Below, one piece after another: positions 16,922 through 55,390 of a stretch of 64,000 nucleotides of DNA; within the stretch, counting starts at the first letter, position 1; each line of letters starts with the position of its first letter. The stretch comes from Eutreptiella sp. 'Long Island Sound 2002'. Taxonomy: Eukaryota > Protista > Euglenida. Location: NCBI GenBank assembly GCA_964036045.1, contig OZ038379.1, positions 19,344,001-19,408,000 of the forward strand. Reading direction: 5' to 3'. The notes beneath the pieces were generated by a model. It was given only the letters and a program-made list of their open reading frames with translations, searched no databases and had not been told where the DNA came from. The position numbers and the translations under genes were made by a program.

Positions 16922-19748
16922 ATGGGGATCCCCGATACGGCGGGGGTGAGGTAGCCAATTTGCCCACTTGTGGGCCACTTCTGATTTTGCCCCCCGCTCT
17001 TCAGCGGTGGGGTTCCCCCATACGGCAGGGGTGAGGTAGCCAATTTGCCCACTTGTGGGCCACTTCAGATTTTGCCCCCCGCTCTGCAGCGGTGGGGCTC
17101 CCCGATACGGCAGGGGTGAGGTAGCCAATTTGCCCACTTGTGGGCCACTTCTGATTTTGCCCCCGGCTCTGCAGCGGTGGGGCTCCCTGATACGGCAGGG
17201 GTGAGGTAGCCACTTTGCCCACTTGTGGGCCACTTCTGATTTTGCCCCCCGCTCTGCAGCGGTGGGGCTCCCCGATACGGCAGGGGTGAGGTAGCCAATT
17301 TGCCCACTTGTGGGCCACTTCCTATTTTGCCCCCCGCTCTGCAGCGGTGGGGCTCCCCGATACGGCAGGGGTGAGGTAGCCAATTTGCCCACTTGTGGTC
17401 CACTTCTGATTTTGCCCCCCGCTCTGCAGCGGTGGGGCTCCCCGATACGGCAGGGGTGAGGTAGCCACTTTGCCCACTTGTGGGCCACTTCTGTTTTTGC
17501 CCCCCGCTCTGCAGCGGTGGGGCTCCCCGATACGGCACGGGTGAAGTAGCCAATTTGCCCACTTGTGGGCCACTTCTGATTTCCCCCCCCGCTCTGCAGC
17601 GGTGGGGCTCCCCGATACGGCAGGGGTGAGGTAGCCAGTTTGCCCACTGGTGGGCCACTTCTGATTTTGCCCCCCGCTCTGCAGCGGTGGGGCTCCCCGA
17701 TGCGGCAGGGGTGAGGTAGCCACTTTGCCCACTGGTGGGCCACTTCTGATTTTGCCCCCCGCTCTGAAGCGGTGGGGCTCCCCGATACGGCAGGGGTGAG
17801 GTAGCCACTTTGCCCACTTGTGGGCCACTTCTGATTTTGCCCCCCGCTCTGCAGCGGTGGGGCTCCCCGATACGGCAGGGGTGAGGTAGCCAATTTGCCC
17901 ACTTGTGGGCCACTTCTGATTTTCCCCCCCGCTTTGCAGCGGTGGGGCTCCCCGATACGGCAGGGGTGGGGTAGCCAATTTGCCCACTTGTGGGCCACTT
18001 CTGATTTTGCCCCCGGCTCTGCAGCGGTGGGGCTCCCTGATACGGCAGGGGTGAGGTAGCCAATTTGCCCACTTGTGGGCCACTTCTGATTTTGCCCCCC
18101 GCTCTGCAGCGGTGGGGCTCCCCGATACGGCAGGGGTGAGGTAGCCACTTTGCCCACTTGTGGGCCACTTCTGATTTTGCCCCCCGCTCTGCAGCGGTGG
18201 GGCTCCCCGATACGGCAGGGGTGAGGTAGCCAATTTGCCCACTTGTGGGCCACTTCTGATTTTCCCCCCCGCTCTGCAGCGGTGGGGCTCCCCGATACGG
18301 CAGGGGTGAGGTAGCCAATTTGCCCACTTGTGGGCCACTTCTGATTTTGCCCCCCGCTCTGCAGCGGTGGGGCTCCCCGATACGGCAGGGGTGAGGTAGC
18401 CACTTTGCCCACTTGTGGGCCACTTCTGATTTTGCCCCCGGCTCTGCAGCGGTGGGGCTCCCCGATACGGCAGGGGTGAGGTAGCCAATTTGCCCACTTG
18501 TGGGCCACTTCTGATTTTGCCCCCCGCTCTGCAGCGGTGGGGCTCCCCGATACGGCAGGGGTGAGGTAGCCAATTTGCCCACTTGTGGGCCACTTCTAAT
18601 TTTGCCCCCCGCTCTGCAGCGGTGGGGCTCCCCGATACGGCAGGGGTGGGGTAGCCACTTTGCCCACTTGTGGGCCACTTCTGATTTTCCCCCCCGCTCT
18701 GCAGCGGTGGGGCTCCCCGATACGGCAGGGGTGAGGTAGCCAATTTGCCCACTTGTGGGCCACTTCTGATTTTGCCCCCCGCTCTGAAGCGGTGGGGATC
18801 CCCGATACGGCAGGGGTGAGGTAGCCACTTTGCCCACTTGTGGGCCACTTCTGATTTTGCCCCCCGCTCTGCAGCGGTGGGGCTCCCCGATACGGCAGGG
18901 GTGAGGTAGCCAATTTGCCCACTTGTGGGCCACTTCTGATTTTGCCCCCCGCTCTGCAGCGGTGGGGCTCCCCGATACGGCAGGGGTGGGGTAGCCAATT
19001 TGCCCACTTGTGGGCCACTTCTGATTTTGCCCCCCGCTCTGAAGCGGTGGGGCTCCCCGATACGGCAGGGGTGAGGTAGCCAATTTGCCCACTTGTGGGC
19101 CACTTCTGATTTTGCCCCCCGCTCTGCAGCGGTGGGGCTCCCCGATACGGCAGGGGTGATGTAGCCAATTTGCCCACTTGTGGGCCACTTCTGATTTTCC
19201 CCCCCGCTCCGCAGCGGTGGGGCTCCCCGATACGGCAGGGGTGGGGTAGCCAATTTGCCCACTTGTGGGCCACTTCTGATTTTGCCCCCCGCTCTGAAGC
19301 GGTGGGGATCCCCGATACGGCAGGGGTGAGGTAGCCAATTTGCCCACTTGTGGGCCACTTCTGATTTTGCCCCCCGCTCTGCAGCGGTGGGGCTCCTCGA
19401 TACGGCAGGGGTGAGGTAGCCACTTTGCCCACTTGTGGGCCACTTCTGATTTTGCCCCCCGCTCTGAAGCGGTGGGGATCCCCGATACGGCAGGGGTGAG
19501 GTAGCCACTTTGCCCACTTGTGGGCCACTTCTGATTTTGCCCCCCACTCTGAAGCGGTGGGGATCCCCGATACGGCAGGGGTGAGGTAGCCAATTTGCCC
19601 ACTTGTGGGCCACTTCTGATTTTGCCCCCTGCTCTGCAGCGGTGGGGATCCCCGATGCGGCAGGGGTGAGGTAGCCACTTTGCCCACTTGTGGGCCACTT
19701 CTGATTTTGCCCCCCGCTCTGAAGCGGGAGGGATCCCCGATACCGCAG
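16922..19748. repeat. 85-bp tandem satellite, ~33 copies
   Basis: Monomer CACTTCTGATTTTGCCCCCCGCTCTGCAGCGGTGGGGCTCCCCGATACGGCAGGGGTGAGGTAGCCAATTTGCCCACTTGTGGGC recurs at 17061, 17146, 17231 and onward with only scattered substitutions. Confidence 0.98.
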
Positions 19749-22856: not shown

Positions 22857-24534
22857 TGGTTGTGCTAGTCCTAATCCAACAGAGCAGGTGTTTGAGTTTC
22901 CAAGATTTGACGATAGACTGAGCTCAATAGTTGCATATTTGATGAAGGTTGCTGGAGATAAGCTCAACAGTTGTAGCTGTGTTTCATTAGGGAGAATTCC
23001 AGGGTGATTTTTTTGTGAAGGGGCAAGGTAGGAGTTACATTGGCAGGCATGCTGTGGAATTCTGATGCAGGCATTCCCAAGGTGGAAAGATGGAAGTCCA
23101 AAAAGGGCGGGGAGAGGGGGGCATAAGGGAGATGGTTGTTTTGGATATTGCAATGTATCAGCTGCTGTGAAGTTTTTGGCTTTATGGATCTCAAATGCGA
23201 TGCTTTGGGGTCCCCCGCATCCGCCTCCCCCGGTGGAATCCTCCACCTCCCTATGCCCTCTCCCCTGACCTAATTTCCGTTTGTCTTTCTATCAATCATT
23301 CAATCTGTCAATCTGATGAAGTCTCACCCCCTCCCCTGACCCCGAGGGCTCAGTTTGGACCCCCTTGGCAAACCACCTACGTTGTTAGCGTCAAGCATTT
23401 CAACGGCTCCGTCCCCCTCCGCCCCCTGCATTTTTCACTCCACATGTGGACATCTAAGTTTCTGTTTCTTCTCAGTCTCATCGTTCTTATGAATTTCACG
23501 GTTTTCTGGGCATTGCATTGCGAGCTTGGATCCTCCTCTTTCTTTTCTATTCTCAGTTCAGTCGGCATTTACATTTTGGGTTTGACTATTGGTGGTGTTG
23601 TATTTGATCCTCAGTGTGCAATCATATTGATGACAACAGAGACATTGCAGCATTGAAAGTTCGACGACCATTTATTATCTATGTTTCAGAGAATTTAGTG
23701 CATGTGCGCAAACTATATTGTGCACCGCTCGAGTGCGGTGGACAGCCGCTGCTGAGGACCCCCCCAATGGGCGACACGAGCAACAAACACGCCAGGCTAC
23801 CCCGCAAAGGGTCTGTGGACCGTGGCCAGCACTAGTGGAGTCCTCGGCAAACCCCACTTCAGTAAGCTCAAGTGCGGCAAAACCGCCCGCCCAAGCAAGA
23901 GATCCTCGCTCATTGCAAGGGGGCCAAAGCACACTTTCTTTAAGTGTGTACTTATCCCGTCTCGCAATAGAAAGATGCCTTTGGAACATGTACCATTGGC
24001 AGTCTTTCTTCTGCAAACGCTTGCTGCCGTCGCTCCTTTAAGTGCGTTAGTCGCTGTGCAGCAATCCCACGGGAGCTTTTTGGGCAAGCTTGAGGTTTGT
24101 GATGGTTGATTTTCCACAGAAGAATTTTCTCCTTGCAAAGAAGTACCATGTTGGGGACCATGGCGTGCAGATACACTGTAAAGTGTGGTGTACCGCTTGA
24201 TGGAAATCACACACCTAGATTTTGTACCAGAGAAACAGCTACATTGGTGCAACCCCTGCGAAGAAAAAGGCGCCGATTGGTCTGCTCCGGTGGTGTTGTG
24301 GTGCCTCCAGGAAGCATCCAAATCCTGCGAATTCATATTAGGAAACGGTGTGAAATGTTCTTATCTTAGACAGCAAGATGTGGGCTATAGGACAAGTGCA
24401 AATCCACCAAGACTTTTCAAATGGCGATTAGACCAAAGTGTGTTGCCTTGCCGGGGGGGGGGGGGGGGAAGGTGCCCAGTAATCATTCCTTCTTGCACGC
24501 CTAGCTTTACTGACATTTATTTCTTGTGTCACAG

Positions 24535-25220
24535 GCTCCTTCACAAGGCCTCAAAGCCCGCAAGACAAGGGAGGGCTACATCTGGGTGGAGGTACCCATG
24601 CAAGACGTCATTGCTGCACTGCCTGATGCCACGAGGAACACCAGTAACAGTGGCAGCGACGATGTTGGTGGTGGTTGCAGCACCGGCGATGTAGCCGGCA
24701 GTGCGGGTGGGGGTTGCAGTGTGAGCGAAACCGGTGGGGTTATGGCTGGTACGGCAGATGGTACTGCAGGTGGTACAGGAGGTGAGAGTGGCAGTGTGAT
24801 GGGTAGCAATGGTAGTGCAAGTGGCAATGGCAGTGTAAGCGGCAGCAGTGGCGATGTGGCTGGTATTGTAAGGGGCAATGGCAGTGCACGGGGCAGCACT
24901 GGCGACTGGCTGGTAGCACGAGTGGGAGCGGTTACGGTACCAGTAAAGGCAGTGTGAGCAGCATGAGCACCGATATGAAGGATATCATCACGACAGGCAG
25001 AAGTGGCGGTATTGTCCGCCCAAGTGTTGACATAAACAATATATATGCTATCCCGACAGTGATCAGCGTTCCGTATTGTGGCAAGTCTCCTGCCCGGTGG
25101 TATTCTGTAAGAAGGCCAAATGATCCCTACCATCCGTCTCGGCCGGCCTTTTACAATGACTGGTCAACACCAACCCTCATGGACGTGGATCAGTGTGACC
25201 CGAATGCTATGGCACTCTAG
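24535..25220 (+). pseudogene. Terminal exon of paralog 'B' (Gly/Ser-rich, frameshifted near 24905); equivalents 33898-34583 and 43839-44524, deleted in copy 4
   Basis: CTGAC...CACAG| then APSQGLKARKTREGYIWVEV...[G/S-rich]. The second frame continues RPSVDINNIYAIP...RPAFYNDWSTPTLMDVDQCDPNA, collinear with exon A. Confidence 0.55.
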
Positions 25221-26895
25221 GGCATTGGTCAAGCATGTGGCCAAGAAGGTATTGCAAACGCAACATTGAAGTGAAGGGTGCGTGGGGGGTAACGTGATTG
25301 GGGAGCAGTTCGTCCACCATTTGGCCATGTGAGCTTTGTGATGATCCATGCCATCCTACATCCCACCGACAGAGCAACACACATCCATGCCATCAGCCAT
25401 CCGTTGGGTTGGCTGTTCAATAGGGGCACCAACGCACCATTTCAAAATTGTGTGGGCATTGTCTCATTTGTGGACCGCGAGGTCAAAGGCCCTGCAGGAC
25501 GATAGAAAATCCAAAATTTTCACTACGCGAGGCCTGCCCCAGATTCTGGAAGTGGTCACCAGCCACCAAGATACCAGGGATTGAGTCGAAATGCAATGCA
25601 GGTGCGGGCAAAATACCATTGAAACGGCTGTTATGGACAGCCACTGGCTGGTTTATGGGGAGCCCGGTTCGAATCTGCGGATCGAACGCGCCCCCATTCG
25701 ATTTTCCAGTTTTGGGCGCAGGTATTTTTTACTGTGGAGTGCAAACACAACGGAGATGGTCTACTGGATCTGAAGTAAATTGCGGCAGCACAGTGTGGTG
25801 TCTCTCGTCTAAACTAGTGATCATGTGCTGCCAGGCCTGTTTCAGTCTGGTGATCTACAACAGAAATTCAGAATCAAAGAACACAGGCAAAAACTGATGG
25901 CAAACTTTGACGAAGAGCAGAAGTGAGATGCCCAGCTGGCAGATGGCGCGCGTGTCAATCAGTGCAGCACAAAACTTAGTGAGGACATTGCATTTGCATG
26001 GGAATGCACCAAATTGAATGAGGCTAATTGGTGATTCTTTCAAGAAAACTGGTCATTTCGTTTTGTTGCAGCTGAGGGTATCCTTTCACGCATGCTTTGT
26101 TGGCTCAGTGATCTGCCACGTGAGCCACCCTTGTGCACCCCCACAAGCGCCTGTTCTGGGTTTAACTCATCCCTGATGACTTTCCTAAGGCCTTGGGGTT
26201 GCATATTGCAATGCAGTTTGCACGGGCAACAAGATAATGTGAAGGCGGTGTCCAATTTTCAAACCAGGTCTATGTTTTGGCAAATGAGGCTGGGATTGCT
26301 CCACCTTGACAGTCACAGTCACACGAGCCGGCACAGCACACTACACAAGAGCTAGAGGGGCTCAGAGATGTCAGAGGCAGACGGAGACACACAAGGAGAG
26401 GCTGCCGAATGGCGTACACTAGTGGCAGATTGTACCCGGAGAAAAGAACTGCTCTGTGAATGCATGTCGTGGAGGCGGCTCATGATAGAAGGCTATCTAG
26501 AATCGACGATGCGCTGTTGTATCCAGTTTTCGTTGCGAATACTCTTCCCAGTAGAAAAGGGCTTGGGGTCATAGAACACTGGACAATGCGCATCGTGAAG
26601 CATCTGCGGGCTTGCTACATGGAATAGTCGGAGGGAACGTTGGTTGCAAAGGGTTTTTGGGATGGATGGGGCATGGGGTTGATTTTCGGGAAGGTTGCGA
26701 AAAGCTGTGCTGGCTACGCCCATGCCGTGGAGGCTGTGTGGGGATCACTGGATCACTCGCTGTTCGCTAGTGCCATTGGACGTGACCTCACTTGTCTCAA
26801 TATCCTCGGGACCGGGCCATCCCTACCTCCGAAACAGAAACGCGTACGCAGAGTCCTCGTCCAAGCGGGCCTCCCCCCGACCAGATTTTTCAAAC

Positions 26896-27480
26896 CACGG
26901 GGGGGCGGCCGGGCCCGGTCCTTGTATGCAACCCCCCCCCCCCCCCCCCCCCGTCCCCCTCCCCCAGGTTTTGAAAAATAGTGGTGCCGGCTCAGCCACC
27001 AACAAGTGTCTCTAGAGAAAACTGTCCGGCGCCGAAGGCGCCAAAGTTTTTTTTCTTACTACATGTTTATACTCAAAATACTCAAAATTTTTTAGAGAAT
27101 TCATATTTGTGTTAAAACAACAAGAAGGAGGGCTACGGGAGGGCTACAGGCCCTAACAGCAACCAGAACCCTAGCCCCAACCCTAGCCCTAGCCCTAACC
27201 CTAACACTAACCCTAGGGCTAACCCTAACCCTAACCCTAACCCGAGCCCTAACCCCAACCCCTCCCCCCTCACCCCTGGCTGGATGCCCCCATGACCCCC
27301 GGCTAGACCCCCCCCGACCCCCTGCCAGACCCCCCCCCCCCCCCCGGACCCCCGGCCAGACCCCCCCCACCCCCGGGAGGAACCCCCCTCGCCCCCAACT
27401 GCCCCTCCCCCCCCCAGGTTTTGAAAGATAGTTGGGGGGTGGGTCGCATCAGGTGCGGTTGTAGTCGCCACCCCCCCGTG
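26896..27480. mobile_element. Non-autonomous TIR element (MITE-like, 585 bp), copy 1
   Basis: Ends CACGGGGGGG / CCCCCCCGTG are perfect inverted repeats. TTTCAAAC flanks both sides (26888-26895, 27481-27488). A single TTTCAAAC sits at the homologous position of copy 4. Confidence 0.8.
27151..27262 (+). repeat. Interstitial telomere-like (CCCTAA/CCCTAG)n tract inside the TIR element; also 36513-36630 and 46450-46567
   Basis: About 18-19 hexamers mixing CCCTAA, CCCTAG, CCCCAA and CACTAA. Copies 2 and 3 have one more hexamer than copy 1. Confidence 0.9.
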
Positions 27481-30400
27481 TTTCAAACATCCTCCATTTC
27501 CGGCAATTGGGTTACTGTTTTTGGTGGTCAACGAAGAGGAAAAATGGGAGGAATCCGCACTGTGTGTTGCATTCGCTACCACAATGTCCTATCGGACAAT
27601 CATAGCAGTGGACAGCTTGAAGTTTGATTCCCAGAGTTGCGTATAGGGGTCCACAGAGCGGGAAGGAGGCAATTTGGCGACATAACCCCTACCATATCCG
27701 GGACGAGCAGAGGTTATGAGACCATTTCCTTGTTCTACCTTTTGACTCTCCCAGGCATGCCCCAACTTGTACCCGAGCATCGGGGGGTGCATCAGTTCCC
27801 TTGCGTTGGAATATTGAAGTATCATCTCTGTCCCGGCGACAGGTGCAACAAGCACCCAGAATGCAAGAAATCCAATCACACGTGTTTTGCAAACTTTTGT
27901 GCAGCGGCGACCACTGCCCTAGCCTCATGCCTTTTGTGCAGTTGGAACCACAGCCCCAACCAAACCCCTTTTGTACAGCGACAACTGCGTTCCTCAGCAC
28001 CTCCTTTTGTGCAACTACAGCCGTAGCAGGGTTTGATGATGGCCCGGTTGGTGTGGATGCAGTGATATGGCCATAGAATGCACTGCCATATATTTCTGAA
28101 TGCAACCGTGTGTTCGCATGGGGTTTTGCGTGGGGGCCCTCAAATCCGGCATAATTCATTGCCATGGAATCAGGTCTTTTTCCCCTGCTCTCTTAATATG
28201 GCAGACACTAGTGCTCCTCACGTGGTTGTTGATAATGTTGTTGCTGATGGACTTGACACCATGCATCTTCTAGCCATGAATGCGGGTACCAGGCTCAAGT
28301 ATGATCATTTTGCTTGGTTTGCATGCCCCTTGCCCACTTTTGGGCACATTCTGGCTTTCAGCTTCCAGCTCTACATTCAGCCCAAGTTTGAATTCTACCC
28401 CAGATCTAATTGTGAGCCCTAGAATTCTGATTTTAGCCCTCAACATACCAACACTTTGAAATCCTAAACAACCCTAAACAGCCGTGACTAGCCCTCCTCA
28501 AACCCGATGGACGTCCAAATACTGCTCCACAAGCCTCAACAATACTAAATAAGCCTCCACAACCCTCAGCGATTAGACCAGCACTGGTCTTCTGCCCAGA
28601 TTCCACCTTCGTTCGCTGAGATACAACCAAGATGGATCCAACCAAGGTGATAAGGATCCGCGGGCCCAACGTGAGCAATATTTCAAGTCCAAGTCTCGTG
28701 GATCAACCAACAAGTGGGCGAGGCCCGCTCCCGTTCCCAAGCCCAATCTCAGTCCCATTGCCAGTCCAAGTCTCGTCGAGGCCTAACAAACAAAAGCATT
28801 TGGGGCATGCTTACGGCGGCAAAAGTGCTTCCCATAACCTTGAGAGGTGAACGTACGCTCAAGGTCCACACAACGCAGGCAGCCGCCGATGCCAAGAGAC
28901 AGGTTGGCAACCAAGCGCCGCTCGACCAGATGTGTAATGAACAGGTTTGGGGGCTGTTGCCGTTCTTGTCATGCTGGAGCTATCTCTTTTGCACAGGTTT
29001 GCTCCCTTTGCCAGGCCAAGGCATGGTGTTTGTGAATATTGATTTTGCATGTGTGAGGGATCATGTAGGGCAAAAATTTGTGATATTGATTTTGACGGGA
29101 GAAAACTACATGACACAATTTGTAGTGTAACCACCCCCCCCCCTCTGCAAGTGAGAATCCTGAATGGATAGCGGGGCTGTTGCATGTTTGATGAGGGGAA
29201 AACGTTCACAAGGGACTGTGGCACACTGAATCCCCTCTTTGCCAAATGTGGTTGGCTTTATCCAGAACCTTTTCTTGTTTTGTTGTGCCAACGAGGTTCA
29301 GGTGCATTGGCATTGGAGGGGGGCGAAGTAGAAAGTGCAAGTTACGAAGCACAACAGGAGTCAGAAACCGAAATGGAGCACTGCTACGTAAGAGTCCCCA
29401 TGCCACCGGATGCCCTCAGTCCCCACTCCCTTCACTTTCCAGGGCACTAAATTTTCCCTTGTCTTTATTCACCCACAACATACCATGTTTGCATATGGCC
29501 CTTTTTCAGGCCTTGCTACTCCAGTTAGTAGCCCAAAGCTCGTGCCAACAGCCCCACCAGGTGTCTGAATTCATACCTGCATCTCGGTCCTCCCTCCCTC
29601 ACACGGCACGCTGCTCAGAAGTTTGATGTCAAGAGGCATTCTGTACAGCAAGGAGAGCGTGGATGGCGGGAAGGACTCAAGAGGGGAGCGATGGGGAGTT
29701 TTATGAGGCTCCATGAGGTACCAGAAGGACACCGCAGTGTGCATACGGGTCTGGCAAAGCATGTCCAGACACGGATTGGCGGACCTGCATTGGGATTGGC
29801 AGTAGGCCGGGACATGCATGGACATGCACTGGCATGCACGATTTTTACTCTTGACATGCCTGGAAAAAATGGATTTGTGAGCACATGGTTGTCACTCTTG
29901 GATAGCTTGATGCTGACCCATAATTGTTCACTTGCGTGTGCCTTAGGGTGATCTAGCAGTGGCATTGTGTCTAGTAAGTCAGTTCTAAGCATGTCTCCCA
30001 AGTAGGGTGCTGGGGAAACTCCCTGCTTGAACAGAGCCCTATTGAGCACTTTGAAAGCTCTTGTCATGATGTGCTCGGATGCAAGTCAAGGATGCTTAGA
30101 TGCAAAGCATGCAAGTGAAGATCGATGGGTTGGAAAAGCAGATTACCGAGTTGAAGCGAAAATCAGCAGCATCATCAGATTCCGAGGTATGTACTGGAAG
30201 GACAAATCTTTGGGTTGCTGGAATGTGGAATGTTGTGGTAGGAGTGTGCACTGCATGGTGTGTGTAGCAGGGATGGATTTGGCAGCTACTGTTCTTATGG
30301 GTGGGCCTCGTGTTCATCAGGGGGCGAGAGGGTAATAGAAATGGACCGCGAATAGATTTGGGAAGCATTGTGAATTCTTGCAAGGGCCGATGGCTGGAGT

Positions 30401-32223: not shown

Positions 32224-35200
32224 TGGTTGTGCTAGTCCTAATCCAACAGAGCAGGTGTTTGAGTTTCCAAGATTTGACGATAGACTGAGCTCAATAGTTG
32301 CATATTTGATGAAGGTTGCTGGAGATAAGCTCAACAGTTGTAGCTGTGTTTCATTAGGGAGAATTCCAGGGTGATTTTTTTGTGAAGGGGCAAGGTAGGA
32401 GTTACATTGGCAGGCATGCTGTGGAATTCTGATGCAGGCATTCCCAAGGTGGAAAGATGGAAGTCCAAAAAGGGCGGGGAGAGGGGGGCATAAGGGAGAT
32501 GGTTGTTTTGGATATTGCAATGTATCAGCTGCTGTGAAGTTTTTGGCTTTATGGATCTCAAATGCGATGCTTTGGGGTCCCCCGCATCCGCCTCCCCCGG
32601 TGGACTCCTCCACCTCCCTATGCCCTCTCCCCTGACCTAATTTCCGTTTGTCTTTCTATCAATCATTCAATCTGTCAATCTGATGAAGTCTCACCCCCTC
32701 CCCTGACCCCGAGGGCTCAGTTTGGACCCCCTTGGCAAACCACCTACGTTGTTAGCGTCAAGCATTTCAACGGCTCCGTCCCCCTCCGCCCCCTGCATTT
32801 TTCACTCCACATGTGGACATCTAAGTTTCTGTTTCTTCTCAGTCTCATCGTTCTTATGAATTTCACGGTTTTCTGGGCATTGCATTGCGAGCTTGGATCC
32901 TCCTCTTTCTTTTCTATTCTCATTTCAGTCGGCATTTACATTTTGGGTTTGACTATTGGTGGTGTTGTATTTGATCCTCAGTGTGCAATCATATTGATGA
33001 CAACAGAGACATTGCAGCATTGAAAGTTCGACGACCATTTATTATCTATGTTTCAGAGAATTTAGTGCATGTGCGCAAACTATATTGTGCACCGCTCGAG
33101 TGCGGTGGACAGCCGCTGCTGAGGACCCCCCCAATGGGCGACACGAGCAACAAACACGCCAGGCTACCTCGCAAAGGGTCTGTGGACCGTGGCCAGCACT
33201 AGTGGAGTCCTCGGCAAACCCCACTTCAGTAAGCTCAAGTGCGGCAAAACCGCCCGCCCAAGCAAGAGATCCTCGCTCATTGCAAGGGGGCCAAAGCACA
33301 CTTTCTTTAAGTGTGTACTTATCCCGTCTCGCAATAGAAAGATGCCTTTGGAACATGTACCATTGGCAGTCTTTCTTCTGCAAACGCTTGCTGCCGTCGC
33401 TCCTTTAAATGCGTTAGTCGCTGTGCAGCAATCCCACGGGAGCTTTTTGGGCAAGCTTGAGGTTTGTGATGGTTGATTTTCCACAGAAGAATTTTCTCCT
33501 TGCAAAGAAGTACCATGTTGGGGACCATGGCGTGCAGATACACTGTAAAGTGTGGTGTACCGCTTGATGGAAATCACACACCTAGATTTTGTACCAGAGA
33601 AACAGCTACATTGGTGCAACCCCTGCGAAGAAAAAGGCGCCGATTGGTCTGCTCCGGTGGTGTTGTGGTGCCTCCAGGAAGCATCCAAATCCTGCGAATT
33701 CATATTAGGAAACGGTGTGAAATGTTCTTATCTTAGACAGCAAGATGTGGGCTATAGGACAAGTGCAAATCCACCAAGACTTTTCAAATGGCGATTAGAC
33801 CAAAGTGTGTTGCCTTGCCGGGGGGGGGGGGGAGGTGCCCAGTAATCATTCCTTCTTGCACGCCTAGCTTTACTGACATTTATTTCTTGTGTCACAGGCT
33901 CCTTCACAAGGCCTCAAAGCCCGCAAGACAAGGGAGGGCTACATCTGGGTGGAGGTACCCATGCAAGACGTCATTGCTGCACTGCCTGATGCCACGAGGA
34001 ACACCAGTAACAGTGGCAGCGACGATGTTGGTGGTGGTTGCAGCACCGGCGATGTAGCCGGCAGTGCGGGTGGGGGTTGCAGTGTGAGCGAAACCGGTGG
34101 GGTTATGGCTGGTACGGCAGATGGTACTGCAGGTGGTACAGGAGGTGAGAGTGGCAGTGTGATGGGTAGCAATGGTAGTGCAAGTGGCAATGGCAGTGTA
34201 AGCGGCAGCAGTGGCGATGTGGCTGGTATTGTAAGGGGCAATGGCAGTGCACGGGGCAGCACTGGCGACTGGCTGGTAGCACGAGTGGGAGCGGTTACGG
34301 TAGCAGTAAAGGCAGTGTGAGCAGCATGAGCACCGATATGAAGGATATCATCACGACAGGCAGAAGTGGCGGTATTGTCCGCCCAAGTGTTGACATAAAC
34401 AATATATATGCTATCCCGACAGTGATCAGCGTTCCGTATTGTGGCAAGTCTCCTGCCCGGTGGTATTCTGTAAGAAGGCCAAATGATCCCTACCATCCGT
34501 CTCGGCCGGCCTTTTACAATGACTGGTCAACACCAACCCTCATGGACGTGGATCAGTGTGACCCGAATGCTATGGCACTCTAGGGCATTGGTCAAGCATG
34601 TGGCCAAGAAGGTATTGCAAACGCAACATTGAAGTGAAGGGTGCGTGGGGGGTAACGTGATTGGGGAGCAGTTCGTCCACCATTTGGCCATGTGAGCTTT
34701 GTGATGATCCATGCCATCCTACATCCCACCGACAGAGCAACACACATCCATGCCATCAGCCATCCGTTGGGTTGGCTGTTCAATAGGGGCACCAACGCAC
34801 CATTTCAAAATTGTGTGGGCATTGTCTCATTTGTGGACCGCGAGGTCAAAGGCCCTGCAGAACGATAGAAAATCCAAAATTTTCACTACGCGAGGCCTGC
34901 CCCAGATTCTGGAAGTGGTCACCAGCCACCAAGATACCAGGGATTGAGTCGAAATGCAATGCAGGTGCGGGCAAAATACCATTGAAACGGCTGTTATGGA
35001 CAGCCACTGGCTGGTTTATGGGGAGCCCGGTTCGAATCTGCGGATCGAACGCGCCCCCATCCGATTTTCCATTTTTGGGCGCAGGTATTTTTTACTGTGG
35101 AGTGCAAACACAACGGAGATGGTCTACTGGATCTGAAGTAAATTGCGGCAGCACAGTGTGGTGTCTCTCGTCTAAACTAGTGATCATGTGCTGCCAGGCC

Positions 35201-36258: not shown

Positions 36259-36853
36259 CACGGGGGGGCGGCCGGGCCCGGTCCTTGTATGCAACCCCCC
36301 CCCCCCCCCCCCCCGTCCCCCTCCCCCAGGTTTTGAAAAATAGTGGTGCCGGCTCAGCCACCAACAAGTGTCTCTAGAGAAAACTGTCCGGCGCCGAAGG
36401 CGCCAAAGTTTTTTTTCTTACTACATGTTTATACTCAAAATACTCAAAATTTTTTAGAGAATTCATATTTGTGTTAAAACAACAAGAAGGAGGGCTACGG
36501 GAGGGCTACAGGCCCTAACAGCAACCAGAACCCTAGCCCCAACCCTAGCCCTAGCCCTAACCCTAACACTAACCCTAACCCTAGGGCTAACCCTAACCCT
36601 AACCCTAACCCGAGCCCTAACCCCAACCCCTCCCCCCTCACCCCTGGCTGGATGCCCCCATGACCCCCGGCTAGACCCCCCCCCGACCCCCTGCCAGACC
36701 CCCCCCCCCCCCCCCGGACCCCCGGCCAGAGCCCCCCCCACCCCCGGGAGGAACCCCCCTCGCCCCCAACTGCCCCTCCCCCCCCCCAGGTTTTGAAAGA
36801 TAGTTGGGGGGTGGGTCGCATCAGGTGCGGTTGTAGTCGCCCCCCCCCCCGTG
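36259..36853. mobile_element. TIR element, copy 2 (595 bp)
   Basis: Same TIRs; TTTCAAAC at 36251-36258 and 36854-36861. Confidence 0.8.
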
Positions 36854-46199: not shown

Positions 46200-46789
46200 C
46201 ACGGGGGGGGCGGCCAGGCCCGGTCCTTGTATGCAACCCCCCCCCCCCCCCGTCCCCCTCCCCCAGGTTTTGAAAAATAGTGGTGCCGGCTCAGCCACCA
46301 ACAAGTGTCTCTAGAGAAAACTGTCCGGCGCCGAAGGCGCCAAAGTTTTTTTTCTTACTACATGTTTATACTCAAAATACTCAAAATTTTTTAGAGAATT
46401 CATATTTGTGTTAAAACAACAAGAAGGAGGGCTACGGGAGGGCTACAGGCCCTAACAGCAACCAGAACCCTAGCCCCAACCCTAGCCCTAGCCCTAACCC
46501 TAACACTAACCCTAACCCTAGGGCTAACCCTAACCCTAACCCTAACCCGAGCCCTAACCCCAACCCCTCCCCCCTCACCCCTGGCTGGATGCCCCCATGA
46601 CCCCCGGCTAGACCCCCCCCGACCCCCTGCCAGACCCCCCCCCCCCCCCCGGACCCCCGGCCAGACCCCCCCCACCCCCGGGAGGAACCCCCCTCGCCCC
46701 CAACTGCCCCTCCCCCCCCCCCCAGGTTTTGAAAGATAGTTGGGGGGTGGGTCGCATCAGGTGCGGTTGTAGTCGCCCCCCCCCCCGTG
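46200..46789. mobile_element. TIR element, copy 3 (590 bp)
   Basis: Same TIRs; TTTCAAAC at 46192-46199 and 46790-46797. Confidence 0.8.
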
Positions 46790-48427
46790 TTTCAAACATC
46801 CTCCATTTCCGGCAATTGGGTTACTGTTTTTGGTGGTCAACGAAGAGGAAAAATGGGAGGAATCCGCACTGTGTGTTGCATTCGCTACCACAATGTCCTA
46901 TCGGACAATCATAGCAGTGGACAGCTTGAAGTTTGATTCCCAGAGTTGCGTATAGGGGTCCACAGAGCGGGAAGGAGGCAATTTGGCGACATAACCCCTA
47001 CCATATCCGGGACGAGCAGAGGTTATGAGACCATTTCCTTGTTCTACCTTTTGACTCTCCCAGGCATGCCCCAACTTGTACCCGAGCATCGGGGGGTGCA
47101 TCAGTTCCCTTGCGTTGGAATATTGAAGTATCATCTCTGTCCCGGCGACAGGTGCAACAAGCACCCAGAATGCAAGAAATCCAATCACACGTGTTTTGCA
47201 AACTTTTGTGCAGCGGCGACCACTGCCCTAGCCTCATGCCTTTTGTGCAGTTGGAACCACAGCCCCAACCAAACCCCTTTTGTACAGCGACAACTGCGTT
47301 CCTCAGCACCTCCTTTTGTGCAACTACAGCCGTAGCAGGGTTTGATGATGGCCCGGTTGGTGTGGATGCAGTGATATGGCCATAGAATGCACTGCCATAT
47401 ATTTCTGAATGCAACCGTGTGTTCGCATGGGGTTTTGCGTGGGGGCCCTCAAATCCGGCATAATTCATTGCCATGGAATCAGGTCTTTTTCCCCTGCTCT
47501 CTTAATATGGCAGACACTAGTGCTCCTCACGTGGTTGTTGATAATGTTGTTGCTGATGGACTTGACACCATGCATCTTCTAGCCATGAATGCGGGTACCA
47601 GGCTCAAGTGTGATCATTTTGCTTGGTTTGCATGCCCCTTGCCCACTTTTGGGCACATTCTGGCTTTCAGCTTCCAGCTCTACATTCAGCCCAAGTTTGA
47701 ATTCTACCCCAAATCTAATTGTGAGCCCTAGAATTCTGATTTTAGCCCTCAACATACCAACACTTTGAAATCCTAAACAACCCTAAACAGCCGTGACTAG
47801 CCCTCCTCAAACCCGATGGACGTCCAAATACTGCTCCACAAGCCTCAACAATACTAAATAAGCCTCCACAACCCTCAGCGATTAGACCAGCACTGATCTT
47901 CTGCCCAGATTCCACCTTCGTTCGCTGAGATACAACCAAGATGGATCCAACCAAGGTGATAAGGATCCGCGGGCCCAACGTGAGCAATATTTCAAGTCCA
48001 AGTCTCGTGGATCAACCAACAAGTGGGCGAGGCCCGCTCCCGTTCCCAAGCCCAATCCCAGTCCCATTGCCAGTCCAAGTCTCGTCGAGGCCTAACAAAC
48101 AAAAGCATTTGGGGCATGCTTACGGCGGCAAAAGTGCTTCCCATAACCTTGAGAGGTGAACGTACGCTCAAGGTCCACACAACGCAAGCAGCCGCCGATG
48201 CCAAGAGACAGGTTGGCAACCAAGCGCCGCTCGACCAGATGTGTAATGAACAGGTTTGGGGGCTGTTGCCGTTCTTGTCATGCTGGAGCTATCTCTTTTG
48301 CACAGGTTTGCTCCCTTTGCCAGGCCAAGGCATGGTGTTTGTGAATATTGATTTTGCATGTGTGAGGGGTCATGTAGGGCAAAAATTTGTGATATTGATT
48401 TTGACGGGAGAAAACTACATGACACAA

Positions 48428-51400
48428 TTTGTAGTGTAACCACCCCCCCCCCTCTGCAAGTGAGAATCCTGAATGGATAGCGGGGCTGTTGCATGTTTGA
48501 TGAGGGGAAAACGTTCACAAGGGACTGTGGCACGCTGAATCCCCTCTTTGCCAAATGTGGTTGGCTTTATCCAGAACCTTTTCTTGTTTTGTTGTGCCAA
48601 CGAGGTTCAGGTGCATTGGCATTGGAGGGGGGCGAAGTAGAAAGTGCAAGTTACGAAGCACAACAGGAGTCAGAAACCGAAATGGAGCACTGCTACGTAA
48701 GAGTCCCCATGCCACCGGATGCCCTCAGTCCCCACTCCCTTCACTTTCCAGGGCACTAAATTTTCCCTTGTCTTTATTCACCCACAACATACCATGTTTG
48801 CATATGGCCCTTTTTCAGGCCTTGCTACTCCAGTTAGTAGCCCAAAGCTCGTGCCAACAGCCCCACCAGGTGTCTGAATTCACACCTGCATCTCGGTCCT
48901 CCCTCCCTCACACGGCACGCTGCTCAGAAGTTTGATGTCAAGAGGCATTCTGTACAGCAAGGAGAGCGTGGATGGCGGGAAGGACTCAAGAGGGGAGCGA
49001 TGGGGAGTTTTATGAGGCTCCATGAGGTACCAGAAGGACACCGCAGTGTGCATACGGGTCTGGCAAAGCATGTCCAGACACGGATTGGCGGACCTGCATT
49101 GGGATTGGCAGTAGGCCGGGACATGCATGGACATGCACTGGCATGCACGATTTTTACTCTTGACATGCCTGGAAAAAATGGATTTGTGAGCACATGGTTG
49201 TCACTCTTGGATAGCTTGATGCTGACCCATAATTGTTCACTTGCGTGTGCCTTAGGGTGATCTAGCAGTGGCATTGTGTCTAGTAAGTCAGTTCTAAGCA
49301 TGTCTCCCAAGTAGGGTGCTGGGGAAACTCCCTGCTTGAACAGAGCCCTATTGAGCACTTTGAAAGCTCTTGTCATGATGTGCTCGGATGCAAGTCAAGG
49401 ATGCTTAGATGCAAAGCATGCAAGTGAAGATCGATGGGTTGGAAAAGCAGATTACCGAGTTGAAGCGAAAATCAGCAGCATCATCAGATTCCGAGGTATG
49501 TACTGGAAGGACAAATCTTTGGGTTGCTGGAATGTGGAATGTTGTGGTAGGAGTGTGCACTGCATGGTGTGTGTAGCAGGGATGGATTTGGCAGCTACTG
49601 TTCTTATGGGCGGGCCTCGTGTTCATCAGGGGGCGAGAGGGTAATAGAAATGGACCGCGAATAGATTTGGGAAGCATTGCGAATTCTTGCAAGGGCCGAT
49701 GGCTGGAGTATTGGGGCAAACTAATGGCCGTGGTAGGAGCAGCCGGGGCCAACAAGGACTGTATGCAAGCATGGCATGAAATGTGTGAATAAACACATGT
49801 GCAAGTACAACCACCTGGGAAGTGAAGGGAGTGGGGGCCCCAGTTGGTATGAGGACACAGCACGCGGCCCGGCACAGGTGTTGTGTTGAGAGGCATCCAG
49901 CATGCAAAGTGGGTGTGGACAACGGTAAGGAAAAGGAGGAAGAGCAACAGAGAAGTTTGCACAGCTCCATGAGGTACCAGAACGACACCAAAGTGTGTAT
50001 GGGGGGCGGTGTCTGCCTGGGCCTTTGGATAATGAAATGACGTTTATGAAATTCCTTTTTGTCTCTTTTGAGGAGGGGCGAATTCGAGGGCCACATGCGA
50101 GCGCCAAAGGGGTACAAAATGGCCAAAAATGCAGTCAATTCTTTCCTCAAAAGCCTCCGTTGCTTTCTTTCCCACTCCCTCTCCCCGCCCCCTGCCGCTG
50201 GTCCACTCTCTCTTTGCCGTGCTAGATGCCTCTCGACTTTGAAATGCGTTAGGACCAACAAAATTTTTGACCCCAACCATATACATCTCCTTGTTTGTTG
50301 TATTCTGGTGCTTGATTTGGTGGGTCTCTTGGCGGGGGGTAGTTTGTACGGAATGGGCTATGCAGAGTCCTGTGAAAGCGCTTGTGGGAAAGACGCCCTG
50401 TCAATGCATGCTAGGGTGCCATATCGTACCAGGGTCCATGAAATAAGGATACGGAGCGCAAAGGGTACCATTAGGGCATCGTGCAAATCCAAGGGTGAGG
50501 GCTAGGCGGGCCTTGAGCCCCCGTTTGGACCTCCTCCCCCCCCCCTTTCTCAGGGAGCCCCAAAGCCCCAGGCCCCCCCCATCCCCTTTTGGCAATTGGA
50601 TTTGCCAGTGCCTCAGCCCTCAGAAGACGGCAATGTCTTATGTTGAGGGCATCCATTGGACCATTTGGGTTGTTATGAAATCAAATCAAATCAAAAAATC
50701 TTGCATCTCATCTTTCGAAATGTTGACACTTCTTGACAGGCTTTAAAATCAGGTTACCTCAAATTATTGCACTTCCTCAGCTCCTTGCACGGTTTCCGGA
50801 TGGGATTGAGTTGTCATCCGGGAACGAGGACTCTTTGCCATGATATCCCTTGCAACGTAATTTGCCAACCTAATTTGCACACTGTGTTTTCTGTCTCAGG
50901 TTCCTTCGCAACGGCAAAAAGCTCGTAAGACACCGGAGGGTTTCAAATGGACGTGTGTGTTGGTGCCTGAGGATTTTGACAACGCTGAAGGCAATAATGG
51001 AGAAAATAGCAGCGAGGGTTGTAGCGGTGGCACTAGTGCTGGCAGTGGCAGTGGCAGTGCTGGTGGCTGTGGCGGTGGTAGTGGCGGTGGGGGTGCAGAC
51101 AATAGTGCTAGTTGTGGCACTGGCGTCAGTGATAGTGGCCGTGCAAACAACAGTAGCAATACTAGGGGTAATCGCCAAGACAACAACAGTGGCTGTGATA
51201 TTGGCAACAATGGTAGTTATATTGGTCGCAATATTGGCAATGCGGATCGCACAATGTTCCCCACGCCCATGGGGTATCGGCACCGAGTATTGATATTAAC
51301 ATTATGTATTCTCTCCCCGTGGCATCTAGTGAACCCGAGGTTGGTAAAACGATGCCAAGGAGTTACACGGCACCAAGAATGGAGCCATTTTCCCGTCATC

Positions 51401-54400
51401 AGCCGGCATTTTTCAATGAGTCAACACCGGTTTACATGGACACAGATAGGTGGGATCCAAATGCATCTTCGTGCAAGCAGCCGGCATTTTTCTTCAGCGG
51501 TGTAGGTAGCTACCAACCGCGCATGTAGTGGTTGTGCTAGTCCTAATCCAGCAGAGCAGGTGTTTGAGTTTCCAAGATTTGACGATAGACTGAGCTCAAT
51601 AGTTGCATATTTGATGAAGGTTGCGGGAGATAAGCTCAACAGTTGTAGCTGTGTTTCATTAGGGAGAATTCCAGGGTGATTTTTTTGTGAAGGGGCAGGG
51701 TAGGAGTTACATTGGCAGGCATGCTGTGGAATTCTGATGCAGGCATTCCCAAGGTGGAAAGATGGAAGTCCAAAAAGGGCGGGGAGAGGGGGGCATAAGG
51801 GAGATGGTTGTTTTGGATATTGCAATGTATCAGCTGCTGTGAGTTTTTTGGCTTTATGGATCTCAAATGCGATGCTTTGGGGTCCCCCGCATCCGCCCCC
51901 CCCGGTGGACTCCTCCGCCTACCTATGCCCTCTCCCCTGACCTAATTTCCGTTTGTCTTTCTATAAATCATTCAATCTGTCAATCTCATGAAGTCTCACC
52001 CCCTCCCCTCACCCCGAGGGCTCAGTTTGGACCCCCTTGGCAAACCACCTACGTTGTTAGCGTCAAGCATTTCAACGGCTCCGTCCCCCTCCGCCCCCTG
52101 CATTTTTCACTCCACATGTGGACATCTAAGTTTCTGTTTCTTCTCAGTCTCATCGTTCTTATGAATTTCACGGTTTTCTGGGCATTGCATTGCGAGCTTG
52201 GATCCTCCTCTTTCTTTTTTATTCTCAGTTCAGTCGGCATTTACATTTTGGGTTTGACTATTGGTGGTGTTGTATTTGATCCTCAGTGTGCAATCATATT
52301 GATGACAACAGAGACATTGCAGGATTGAAAGTTCGACGACCATTTATTATCTATGTTTCAGAGAATTTAGTGCATGTGCGCAAACTATATTGTGCACCGC
52401 TCGAGTGCGGTGGACAGCCGCTGCTGAGGACCCCCCCAACGGGCGACACGAGCAACAAACACGCCAGGCTACCCCGCAAAGGGTCTGTGGACCGTGGCCA
52501 GCACTAGTGGAGTCCTCGGCAAACCCCACTTCAGTAAGCTCAAGTGCGGCAAAACCGCCCGCCCAAGCAAGAGATCCTCGCTCATTGCAAGGGGGCCAAA
52601 GCACACTTTCTTTAAGTGTGTACTTATCCCGTCTCGCAATAGAAAGATGCCTTTGGAACATGTACCATTGGCAGTCTTTCTTCTGCAAACGCTTGCTGCC
52701 GTCGCTCCTTTGAGTGCGTTAGTCGCTGTGCAGCAATCCCACGGGAGCTTTTTGGGCAAGCTTGAGGTTTGTGATGGTTGATTTTCCACAGAAGAATTTT
52801 CTCCTTGCAAAGAAGTACCATGTTGGGGACCATGGCGTGCAGATACACTGTAAAGTGTGGTGTACCGCTTGATGGAAATCACACACCTAGATTTTGTACC
52901 AGAGAAACAGCTACATTGGTGCAACCCCTGCGAAGAAAAAGGCGCCGATTGGTCTGCTTCTGTGGTCCGGTGGTGCCTCCAGGAAGCATCCAAATCCTGC
53001 GAATTCATATTCGGAAACGGTGTGAAATGTTCTTATCTTAGACAGCAAGATGTGGGCTATAGGGCAAGTGCAAATCCACCAAGACTTTTCAAATGGCGAT
53101 TAGACTGTGGAGTGCAAACACAACGGACATGGTCTACTGGATCTGAAGTAAATTGCGGCAGCACAGTGTGGTGTCTTTCGTCTAAACTAGTGATCATGTG
53201 CTGCCAGGCCTGTTTCAGTCTGGTGATCTACAACAGAAATTCAGAATCAAAGAACACAGGCAAAAACTGATGGCAAACTTTGACGAAGAGCAGAAGTGAG
53301 ATGCCCAGCTGGCAGATGGCGCGCGTGTCAATCAGTGCAGCACAAAACTCAGTGAGGACATTGCATTTGCATGGGAATGCACCAAATTGAATGAGGCTAA
53401 TTGGTGATTCTTTCAAGAAAACTGGTCATTTCGTTTTGTTGTAGCTGAGGGTATCCTTTCACGCATGCTTTGTTGGCTCAGTGATCTGCCACGTGAGCCA
53501 CCCTTGTGCACCCCCACAAGCGCCTGTTCTGGGTTTAACTCATCCCTGATAACTTTCCTAAGGCCTTGGGGTTGCATATTGCAATGCAGTTTGCACGGGC
53601 AACAAGATAATGCGAAGGCGGTGTCCAATTTTCAAACTAGGTCTATGTTTTGGCAAATGAGGCTGTGATTGCTCCACCTTGACAGTCACAGTCACACGAG
53701 CCGGCACAGCACACTACACAAGAGCTGGAGGGGCTCAGAGATGTCAGAGGCAGACGGAGACACACAAGGGGAGGCTGCCGAATGGCATACACTAGTGGCA
53801 GATTGTACCCGGAGAAAAGAACTGCTCTGTGAATGCATGTCGTGAAGGCGGCTCATGATAGAAGGCTATCTAGAATCGACGATGCGCTGTTGTATCCAGT
53901 TTTCGTTGCGAATACTCTTCCCAGTAGAAAAGGGCTTGAGGTCATAGAACACTGGACAATGCGCATCCTGAAGCATCTGCGGGCTTGCTACATGGAATAG
54001 TCGGAGGGAACGTTGGTTGCAAAGGGTTTTTGGGATGGATGGGGCATGGGGTTGATTTCCGGGAAGGTTGCGAAAAGCTGTGCTGGCTACGCCCATGCCG
54101 TGGAGGCTGTGTGGGGATCACTGGATCACTCGCTGTTCGCTAGTGCCATTGGACGTGACCTCACTTGTCTCAATATCCTCGGGACCGGGCCATCCCTACC
54201 TCCGAAACAGAAACGCGTACGCAGAGTCCTCGTCCAAGCAGGCCTTCCCCCGACCAGATTTTTCAAACATCCCCCATTTCGAGCAATTGGGTTACTTTTT
54301 TTGGTGGTCAACGAAGAGGAAAAATGGGAGGAATCCGCACTGTGTGTTGCATTCGCTACCACCGTGTCCTATCGGACAATCGTAGCAGTGGACAGCTTGA

Positions 54401-54493
54401 AGTTTGATTCCCAGAGTTGCGTATAGGGGTCCACAGAGCGGGAAGGAGGCAATTTGGCGACATAACCCCTACCATATCTGGGACGAGCAGAGG
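48428..54493. repeat. Macro-repeat copy 4, truncated and more diverged
   Basis: Homology ends at GACGAGCAGAGG (54493). It lacks ~1.3 kb at 53105/53106 and lacks the ~590-bp TIR element at 54261-54268. Confidence 0.95.
50900..51528 (+). pseudogene. Exon A, copy 4 (same 1-bp deletion)
   Basis: GATCGCACAATG at ~51245-51256. Confidence 0.6.
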
Positions 54494-54675: not shown

Positions 54676-55390
54676 AGCGCTGTGCGCGCACAGTGTGGGC
54701 GCAGTGCAACTATTTGGGCGTGTAGCTGTACAAAAGACCCATACTTTGTGATACTAGGGGCATCATTGTTGCCCCTAGCATAGGTTTTTATGCTTCTGGA
54801 TATGGCATTTTTGGATTTTCTCCCATTTTCACCCGATTCCACCCCTTTTCACACTTTCTTTTCACTCATCTTCACAATGGAATCCCACACTTTGGTGTGG
54901 GCCCTTGAGTTGGGGTGATGGACTCCACGCTTTGGCGTGGCCCCTTGAGTGGACATGACGGACTCCCCGGTTTTGCCTGCCCACATTCGAATCCCCTATC
55001 CCTGCTAATGAGGATGGGTGGTTGTACTGGAAGTCGAAATTGGAGGTTGAACTGGATTCCCTCGTGCAAGCCACTTTGCCCCCCGTTCCGGTTGAGGATG
55101 AGGTGGCCACATACGCTGCTTTGGGACTAGCTGGTAGGGTGAGTGAGCTTTCAATTGAACAAAAAAGAGGATATGTGTGTGGCTTTCCGCATTTTGCATG
55201 ATGTCTTATATAAAGGGAAGGTAGCTTGCATTTGTCTTGAGCTAGGGTAGTTTCGGTGACCTAAATCCAGGGCCGTTTGGGTAGTTGGGGTGGCCTAATT
55301 TTGAGGGTGTTTGGAAGGAGTCGGTATGGGGGTTCTTCATAGGGGAATCTAGTCTAAAAGTAGTGCGCAGTGCGTGCGCAGTGCAAGGAT
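54676..55390. mobile_element. ~700-bp dispersed element, copy 2
   Basis: Collinear with 8470-9155 (same blocks, same orientation). Confidence 0.6.

Follow-up and report, generated by a model that had tools for sequence, protein, structure and literature searches.

How does a tract of telomere-type repeats come to lie inside an insert that is present in three copies of a tandem macro-repeat and missing from the fourth? The question is raised by a 64,000-nucleotide stretch of the genome of Eutreptiella sp. 'Long Island Sound 2002' (GenBank assembly GCA_964036045.1, contig OZ038379.1, positions 19,344,001 to 19,408,000 of the forward strand), hereafter the window. The first insert, element copy 1, is 585 bp long, begins with CACGGGGGGG and ends with CCCCCCCGTG, which form a perfect 10-bp inverted repeat, and is bracketed on either side by TTTCAAAC. 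Its terminal inverted repeats (TIRs) comprise an inverted core of 10–12 nt, beyond which the 5′ and 3′ ends match imperfectly out to about 37 nt; in the window, 6 occurrences of the 12-nt end compare with an expectation of 0.44. Between the ends lie GGCGCCGAAGGCGCC, which is a double-GGCGCC palindrome, a 22-nt subterminal motif present twice in direct orientation, long C-runs, and a tract of 18 in-register hexamers that includes seven CCCTAA and four CCCTAG units. The sole open frames in the window copies (585–595 bp) are translated homopolymer or hexamer runs, and an Rfam search of the window gave no match. Self-comparison of the window places copies 1–3 in a macro-repeat with a period of 9,363–9,941 bp, while unit 4 has a single TTTCAAAC at the corresponding position. 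An earlier note, made from the sequence alone, had described this internal anatomy, including the motif at 26961 and 27411, and had reported the ends, the flanks and the single TTTCAAAC; the internal features were all found as described, and the rest held on reading of the window and self-comparison. As set out below, we regard it as highly probable that the insert is a non-coding cut-and-paste transposon with an inherited tract that acts as a landing pad for another element, and that it entered the macro-repeat by a single insertion.

The 2.28-Gb assembly containing the window was searched with sequences taken from the element. The 25-mer of its 5′ end occurs 1,572 times and the 24-mer of its 3′ end 2,931 times, compared with 0 for the reversed controls, and an 18-mer specific to this carrier, lying directly before the tract, occurs 1,049 times (control, 0). 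All three are dispersed over all large contigs. The best full-length matches are mostly paralogous macro-repeat copies with flanks identical to those in the window; elsewhere, flanks are unrelated and the homology between copies begins and ends precisely at the inverted ends. Seven independent short or medium-length copies each have their own perfect 8-bp target site duplication (TSD): TGCTGCCC, CCCTTGAC, ACACCACA, GGTGTTCC, GCTCCGCC, CCGTTGTG and CAGCCGTC. Perfect TSDs also flank seven copies of 2.8–13.3 kb that are loaded with a second element (ACGTGTAC, TTCTTCAT, GAGGTCGC, CCGCCTAG, CCCGTAAA, CTCGCAAG and TCTACGGG), while in an eighth loaded copy the duplication, TTTGAGGG/TTTGGGGG, matches at 7 of 8 positions. 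Fifteen independent insertions and the window site provide 16 different 8-bp sequences, 15 of them perfectly duplicated. Because the flanks of independent copies differ, each copy has its own duplication and homology stops at the ends, the insert is a miniature, non-coding cut-and-paste DNA transposon with 8-bp TSDs. Its size (below about 800 bp), lack of coding capacity, TIRs with a fixed-length but differing TSD and high, dispersed copy number are those of a miniature inverted-repeat transposable element (MITE). The element's end sequence had no exact match in the metagenome contigs that were scanned.

Within the window, all three filled copies have the same flanks, and this pattern would also fit an explanation that needs no transposon, in which copy 4 arose by a deletion between 8-bp microhomologies or the tract was added at breaks by telomerase. 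That explanation is extremely improbable, given that 15 independent insertions at other loci differ from one another in their matched 8-bp flanks, and that the position, orientation and variant hexamers of the tract are alike in independent copies. Because many copies outside the array carry different 8-bp TSDs, copy 4 is a true empty site, and a microhomology deletion is ruled out as its source. The earlier note had proposed a MITE family and had set a differing TSD at each genomic copy as the test beforehand; both the family and the differing duplications were confirmed. It had also named two findings that would speak for a deletion, namely constant flanks in all other copies or a lack of copies outside the array, and instead copies with other flanks exist outside it.

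The constancy of the tract was assessed in 20 genomic 5′ ends taken in position order. In 16 of these, CCCTAA/CCCTAG hexamers lie about 240–350 bp from the 5′ end, always as the C-strand; in the window copy the distance is about 255 bp. A sister subfamily without the tract, which has just the first 90–250 bp and the last ~100 bp in common with these copies, accounts for the remaining four. An alignment that set five independent copies against those of the window and three from arrays showed a homologous tract with variant hexamers such as CCCTAGGGCTAA in common; the tract therefore descends from the founder copy and was not gained separately at each insertion. The main subfamily, of at least 1,000 copies, has thus inherited the CCCTAA-type tract at a fixed position and in a fixed orientation, and the constancy of the tract, which the earlier note had marked for checking, holds within that subfamily. 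One point tells against our description of it: the telomere-type label rests on long perfect CCCTAA arrays in the genome, not on chromosome caps. A long perfect array of this kind, at C1:200826502-200827151, lies in a 201-Mb contig, about 139 kb short of its end, and its orientation is opposite to that expected of a right-end telomere; a problem of scaffolding or an extensive internal tract may account for this. TTAGGG words are also found in L048, a variant of the tract-less subfamily, within an unrelated tandem repeat of ~48 bp. A 40-bp tandem repeat in the window just past the end of the macro-repeat array (54885-54973) resembles the ~48-bp units of L048, which is a member of this CACGGGG-ended family.

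The tract-less subfamily has its own perfect TSDs and 100%-identical copies on different chromosomes, and deletion derivatives of the family of 123–405 bp occur in the genome. Since the tract-less subfamily is mobile and such derivatives exist, the tract is dispensable for mobility; for the carrier, it would be a passenger. These sequences imply that transposition of the tract-less subfamily was very recent and that the family transposase was active until lately. Tract-less cores with the same CACGGGG ends (L051:560-1473, 914 bp) are 100% identical on C27, C10, C15 and C3. A contrary view is that the tract and the neighbouring C-rich region have been kept for a function, by binding telomere-repeat-binding proteins, forming G-quadruplexes (G4) or seeding heterochromatin; the earlier note had raised the first two of these. 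Retention of the tract in at least 1,000 copies would fit such a role, as would the 7 canonical G4 motifs on the opposite strand of the 585 bp (~12/kb, compared with 0.88/kb window-wide). However, no parts of the alignment vary more in length than the tract and the C-rich region, and the existence of the tract-less subfamily and of the 123–405-bp derivatives shows that mobility does not require the tract, so that retention for function is improbable. As a passenger, the tract would still spread telomere-like, G4-prone DNA, and would provide portable landing pads for a telomere-homing element.

Such an element was found in the carriers themselves. A non-coding element of ~1.15 kb, or a truncated 0.7-kb form of it, interrupts the tract in 12 of the 16 sampled tract-bearing carriers, and also interrupts about half of the copies of the macro-repeat element on other chromosomes; all three copies in the window are unloaded. 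These proportions come from 16–20 sampled copies, which counts against giving them much weight. The 5′ junction of the second element lies directly after a hexamer in 21 of 21 cases, and its 3′ junction continues with ACCC or a variant in 10 of 10. It has one orientation relative to the tract and no target duplication, and its inverted ends are asymmetric, with a 13–14-nt end sequence that recurs inverted 18 nt inside the opposite end. A fixed point in the hexamer, a single orientation, the lack of a TSD and asymmetric inverted ends are together characteristic of telomere homing of the rolling-circle type. The second element is present 9,866 times in the genome, in many cases as arrays that repeat every 1,161 bp, and one aberrant copy was seen (L100).

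Among paralogous copies of one carrier insertion, the second element occupies different hexamers, and it therefore hit the carrier repeatedly and independently. Loaded carriers sometimes hold tandem arrays of up to ~13 kb, with their 8-bp TSDs still intact. Composites of carrier and passenger that share a junction, and even an internal deletion, are present at unrelated loci, with identities of 96.3% (L049/L050), 93.9% (L038/L042) and 95.5% (L042/L045) and with homology starting exactly at the carrier end. The occurrence of identical composites at unrelated loci indicates that loaded carriers transposed as units. Judged from these junctions, the role that can be demonstrated for the tract is that of a target for the second element. 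A wider arrangement is possible, although less likely than not: in a partnership of two enzymes, the MITE landing pads would let the rolling-circle-type, telomere-homing element colonise the chromosome arms, form arrays and be remobilised by the transposase of the carrier, and G4-prone, telomere-like tracts would be seeded by the thousands genome-wide. If so, the seeded tracts could bind telomere proteins or serve in chromosome healing.

The history of the insertion in the macro-repeat was examined at the filled and empty junctions. The filled junction is present at 50 genomic sites, in arrays on C2, C4, C8, C14 and C20, and the empty junction at 6, all with a clean, single TTTCAAAC. Three of the empty sites (window unit 4, L054 and L056) lie in one and the same truncated terminal unit and have a common, unique downstream flank that is 97–98% identical over 2,365 bp. 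The other three (L053 at C2:13141792, L055 at C2:122332411 and L057 at C8:16533105) are in partial macro-repeat units whose match to the repeat, at 94–96% identity, begins 23 bp left of the site and runs rightwards; these units form an older lineage. Since such partial units start 23 bp to the left of the insertion site and terminal units stop 225 bp to its right, the site falls within the short stretch where the two overlap at the edges of the arrays.

The most economical reading of these junctions is that the site was ancestrally empty and that the element would have inserted once, at TTTCAAAC, in a single unit of the macro-repeat. The filled unit would then have multiplied via unequal crossing-over and segmental duplication, while units at the array edges would have been left empty, presumably escaping homogenisation by unequal crossing-over. 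The distribution of filled and empty sites indicates that the insertion is older than the amplification of copies 1–3, as the earlier note had proposed, and older also than the dispersal of the macro-repeat over five chromosomes.

The reverse course of events, in which copy 4 and the other empty sites were once filled and were emptied by a precise loss (excision, or recombination of the two 8-bp duplications with each other), was weighed with a tree of the flanks. In this tree, window unit 4 groups with L054 (support 100/99) and not with units 1–3. Two features of the tree favour precise loss and count against a single insertion followed by amplification: at least two filled/empty state changes are demanded, and the empty terminal unit L056 on C8 pairs with its filled neighbour L029 (98/95). 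This pairing may be accounted for by one precise loss or by gene conversion of the flanks; exchange of flanks between neighbouring array units can mimic it. Precise loss as the general explanation has further to contend with the single clean TTTCAAAC in six of six empty sites, with the recurrence of the same truncated terminal unit and downstream flank in three arrays, and with the older lineage, in which the right flank has diverged to the extent given above. Excision of the hAT type commonly leaves footprints. We therefore consider precise loss quite unlikely, and prefer a single insertion into an ancestrally empty site.

The transposase would be supplied in trans and would make cuts staggered by 8 bp. 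The conserved subterminal motifs, of which the 5′ one is kept in all subfamilies, are candidate binding sites for it. The stretch comprising TTTCAAAC and the 5′ end (26885-26908) is 79% complementary to the region of the 5′ subterminal motif (26956-26979), which may be due to chance or may hint at a target preference. A hAT-type enzyme is the leading candidate, although the assignment is tentative. Its 8-bp TSD is seen here (15 of 16 perfect and one 7/8). Three observations speak against it. The element ends start with CACGG, with C and not a purine as the third base, unlike the usual YARNG of hAT ends; the 16 TSDs have no clear hAT target consensus (the weak nTnnnnAn), the T of position 2 being present in 4 of them and the A of position 7 in 7; and the autonomous partner with the same TIRs that the earlier note had suggested looking for was not found in Pfam, hAT-family and long-copy checks. 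In eight hAT families checked for 2 kb downstream of the dimerisation domain, none ends in a C-run followed by GTG, and the internal regions of the tract-less copies L051 and L052 and of the >6.5-kb copy L109 contain no Pfam-recognisable frames.

Alternatively, the family could be mobilised by an enzyme of the P superfamily or another that produces 8-bp TSDs. Elements of the P superfamily make 8-bp duplications and have ends starting with CA, both of which fit this element, and its CAC start is a misfit to the usual hAT end. However, a six-frame search of the genome with five P/THAP9-type Pfam models (PF12017, PF21787, PF21789, PF21788 and PF12596) gave no match, although these models matched nothing in the control genomes either, which leaves room for such a transposase here; hAT dimerisation domains are very abundant (1,760 candidates). 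Mobilisation by such an enzyme is unlikely, and hAT is retained as the leading candidate.

Two candidate partners were rejected. At C1:7161097-7165936, an 846-aa frame of the hAT-plus-chromodomain type lies between CATGGGG ends that resemble those of the family. This locus was discarded because the hAT has TAAGGTT inverted repeats of its own at the ends of its other copies, and an 8-bp TSD of its own here; it is a TAAGGTT-ended hAT nested inside a diverged, ~400-bp relative of the MITE. RAG1-like transposons of this genome have TG..CA ends and 2-bp duplications. The chromodomain-hAT family may be of interest in itself. In L078:2516-4963 and L070 (C1:7162515-7165052) the 846-aa frame joins a chromodomain (PF00385) to the hAT dimerisation domain, and the family has TAAGGTT-type ends, 8-bp duplications and at least 40 copies at 94–98% identity. 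Also in L078, at 1362-2354, is a ~1-kb insert with inverted arms of ~200 bp; the repeat to which it belongs is very young, and many chromosomes hold copies of it, at dozens of sites in all, that are 98–99% identical.

Comparison with known systems shows likeness in the parts. No description of a MITE with a telomere tract, or of these elements in Euglena, was found in the literature, and elements of this sort go unmentioned in the papers on the published E. gracilis assembly. In vertebrates, short interstitial telomeric sequences are made by telomerase during break repair. Those sequences, like the tracts here, are short internal tracts of the TTAGGG type away from chromosome ends, but the tracts here were inherited within a mobile element, as their shared variant hexamers indicate, and did not arise de novo. 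MITEs derived from hAT elements, such as Mar in Drosophila (PMC3517528) and BniHAT in Brassica nigra (PMC7385995), resemble this family in being small and non-coding, with short TIRs, 8-bp TSDs and a high copy number, presumably in being mobilised in trans, and in having deletion-derivative subfamilies that share just the ends. Unlike them, this family has a fixed internal telomere-type tract, ends of CAC followed by a G-run, and copies that host arrays of a second element, and no matching autonomous hAT was found for it.

The second element behaves like the telomere-repeat-targeting Helitrons of Paramecium aurelia (PMC13085455, 2026). The Paramecium Helitrons target the true chromosome end, whereas here the target is a tract inside a cut-and-paste MITE along the chromosome arms; the window element is accordingly the carrier and not the homing element. 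The ciliate transposons Oxytricha TBE and Tetrahymena Tel-1, as they are represented in that paper (PMC13085455, refs 119-121), are likewise DNA transposons that carry telomere-type repeats. Going by the same source, their repeats are at the termini, while here the tract is internal, at the position given above, and the termini are unrelated G-runs. Helentron-derived HINE/DINE-1 elements (Thomas et al. 2014, as cited in PMC13085455, ref 113) are, so far as that citation describes them, similar to the second element in being non-coding, with asymmetric TIRs, no TSD and tandem arrays, and a further trait of this kind is that, viewed on the G-strand, the second element can be taken to have inserted between two T. 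In contrast to HINE/DINE-1 as described there, the second element is strictly specific for the telomere hexamer.

The features of the window are collected in Table 1. A Pfam search of the longest frames of the macro-repeat gave no match. An 85-bp satellite at 16923-19748 (33 copies, 96% matches) stops exactly at the start of the first macro-repeat unit, at 19746. A second structural difference of terminal unit 4 is a 1,297-bp segment that is present in units 1–3 (24434-25730, 33801-35093 and 43740-45034) and missing from unit 4 (junction at 53105); it has just 2 bp of microhomology, with no evident inverted ends or duplication.

Table 1. Features of the element, its copies and the empty site in the window (positions are those of the window).
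Feature	Position	Strand	Remarks
TSD, left, copy 1 (TTTCAAAC)	26888..26895	.	Window reading
Element copy 1, non-autonomous TIR transposon, unloaded carrier	26896..27480	+	585 bp
5′ TIR, 12-nt core, then imperfect to ~37 nt	26896..26932	+	Homology with unrelated loci begins exactly at 26896
5′ subterminal motif, C-run + GGTTTTGAAA.ATAGT	26961..26982	+	Kept in all subfamilies
Palindromic motif, two GGCGCC with 3-nt spacer	27028..27042	.	Twice in the tract-less subfamily as well
Telomere-type tract, C-strand, 18 degenerate hexamers	27151..27262	+	Unoccupied here; target of the second element in other copies
C-rich region, 64% C, ~53-bp repeats	27263..27410	+	Most of the 7 G-quadruplex-type motifs, on the opposite strand
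3′ subterminal motif	27411..27432	+	Oriented like the 5′ motif
3′ TIR	27444..27480	-	
TSD, right, copy 1 (TTTCAAAC)	27481..27488	.	Window reading
Element copy 2, 595 bp	36259..36853	+	97.8% identity to copy 1; TTTCAAAC either side
Element copy 3, 590 bp	46200..46789	+	96.8% identity to copy 1; TTTCAAAC either side
Macro-repeat unit 4, partial terminal unit	48425..54493	+	Repeat homology stops 225 bp right of the empty site
Empty site, one TTTCAAAC	54261..54268	.	Continuous flanks, in shortened terminal unit 4

A MITE with 8-bp TSDs is of a known kind, and a fixed cargo of telomere-type tract that provides a portable landing pad is an unusual variant of it. Many of the interstitial telomere-type tracts of this genome are then inherited transposon cargo, and not relics of chromosome fusion or of repair by telomerase. 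That one mobile element can be the movable target site of another alters how the distributions of site-specific elements are to be read, and the filled and empty units in paralogous arrays supply a dated marker for the spread of the 9–10-kb macro-repeat. If telomere-binding proteins recognise these tracts, more than 1,000 scattered sites would bear on how chromatin is organised and on the stability of the genome.

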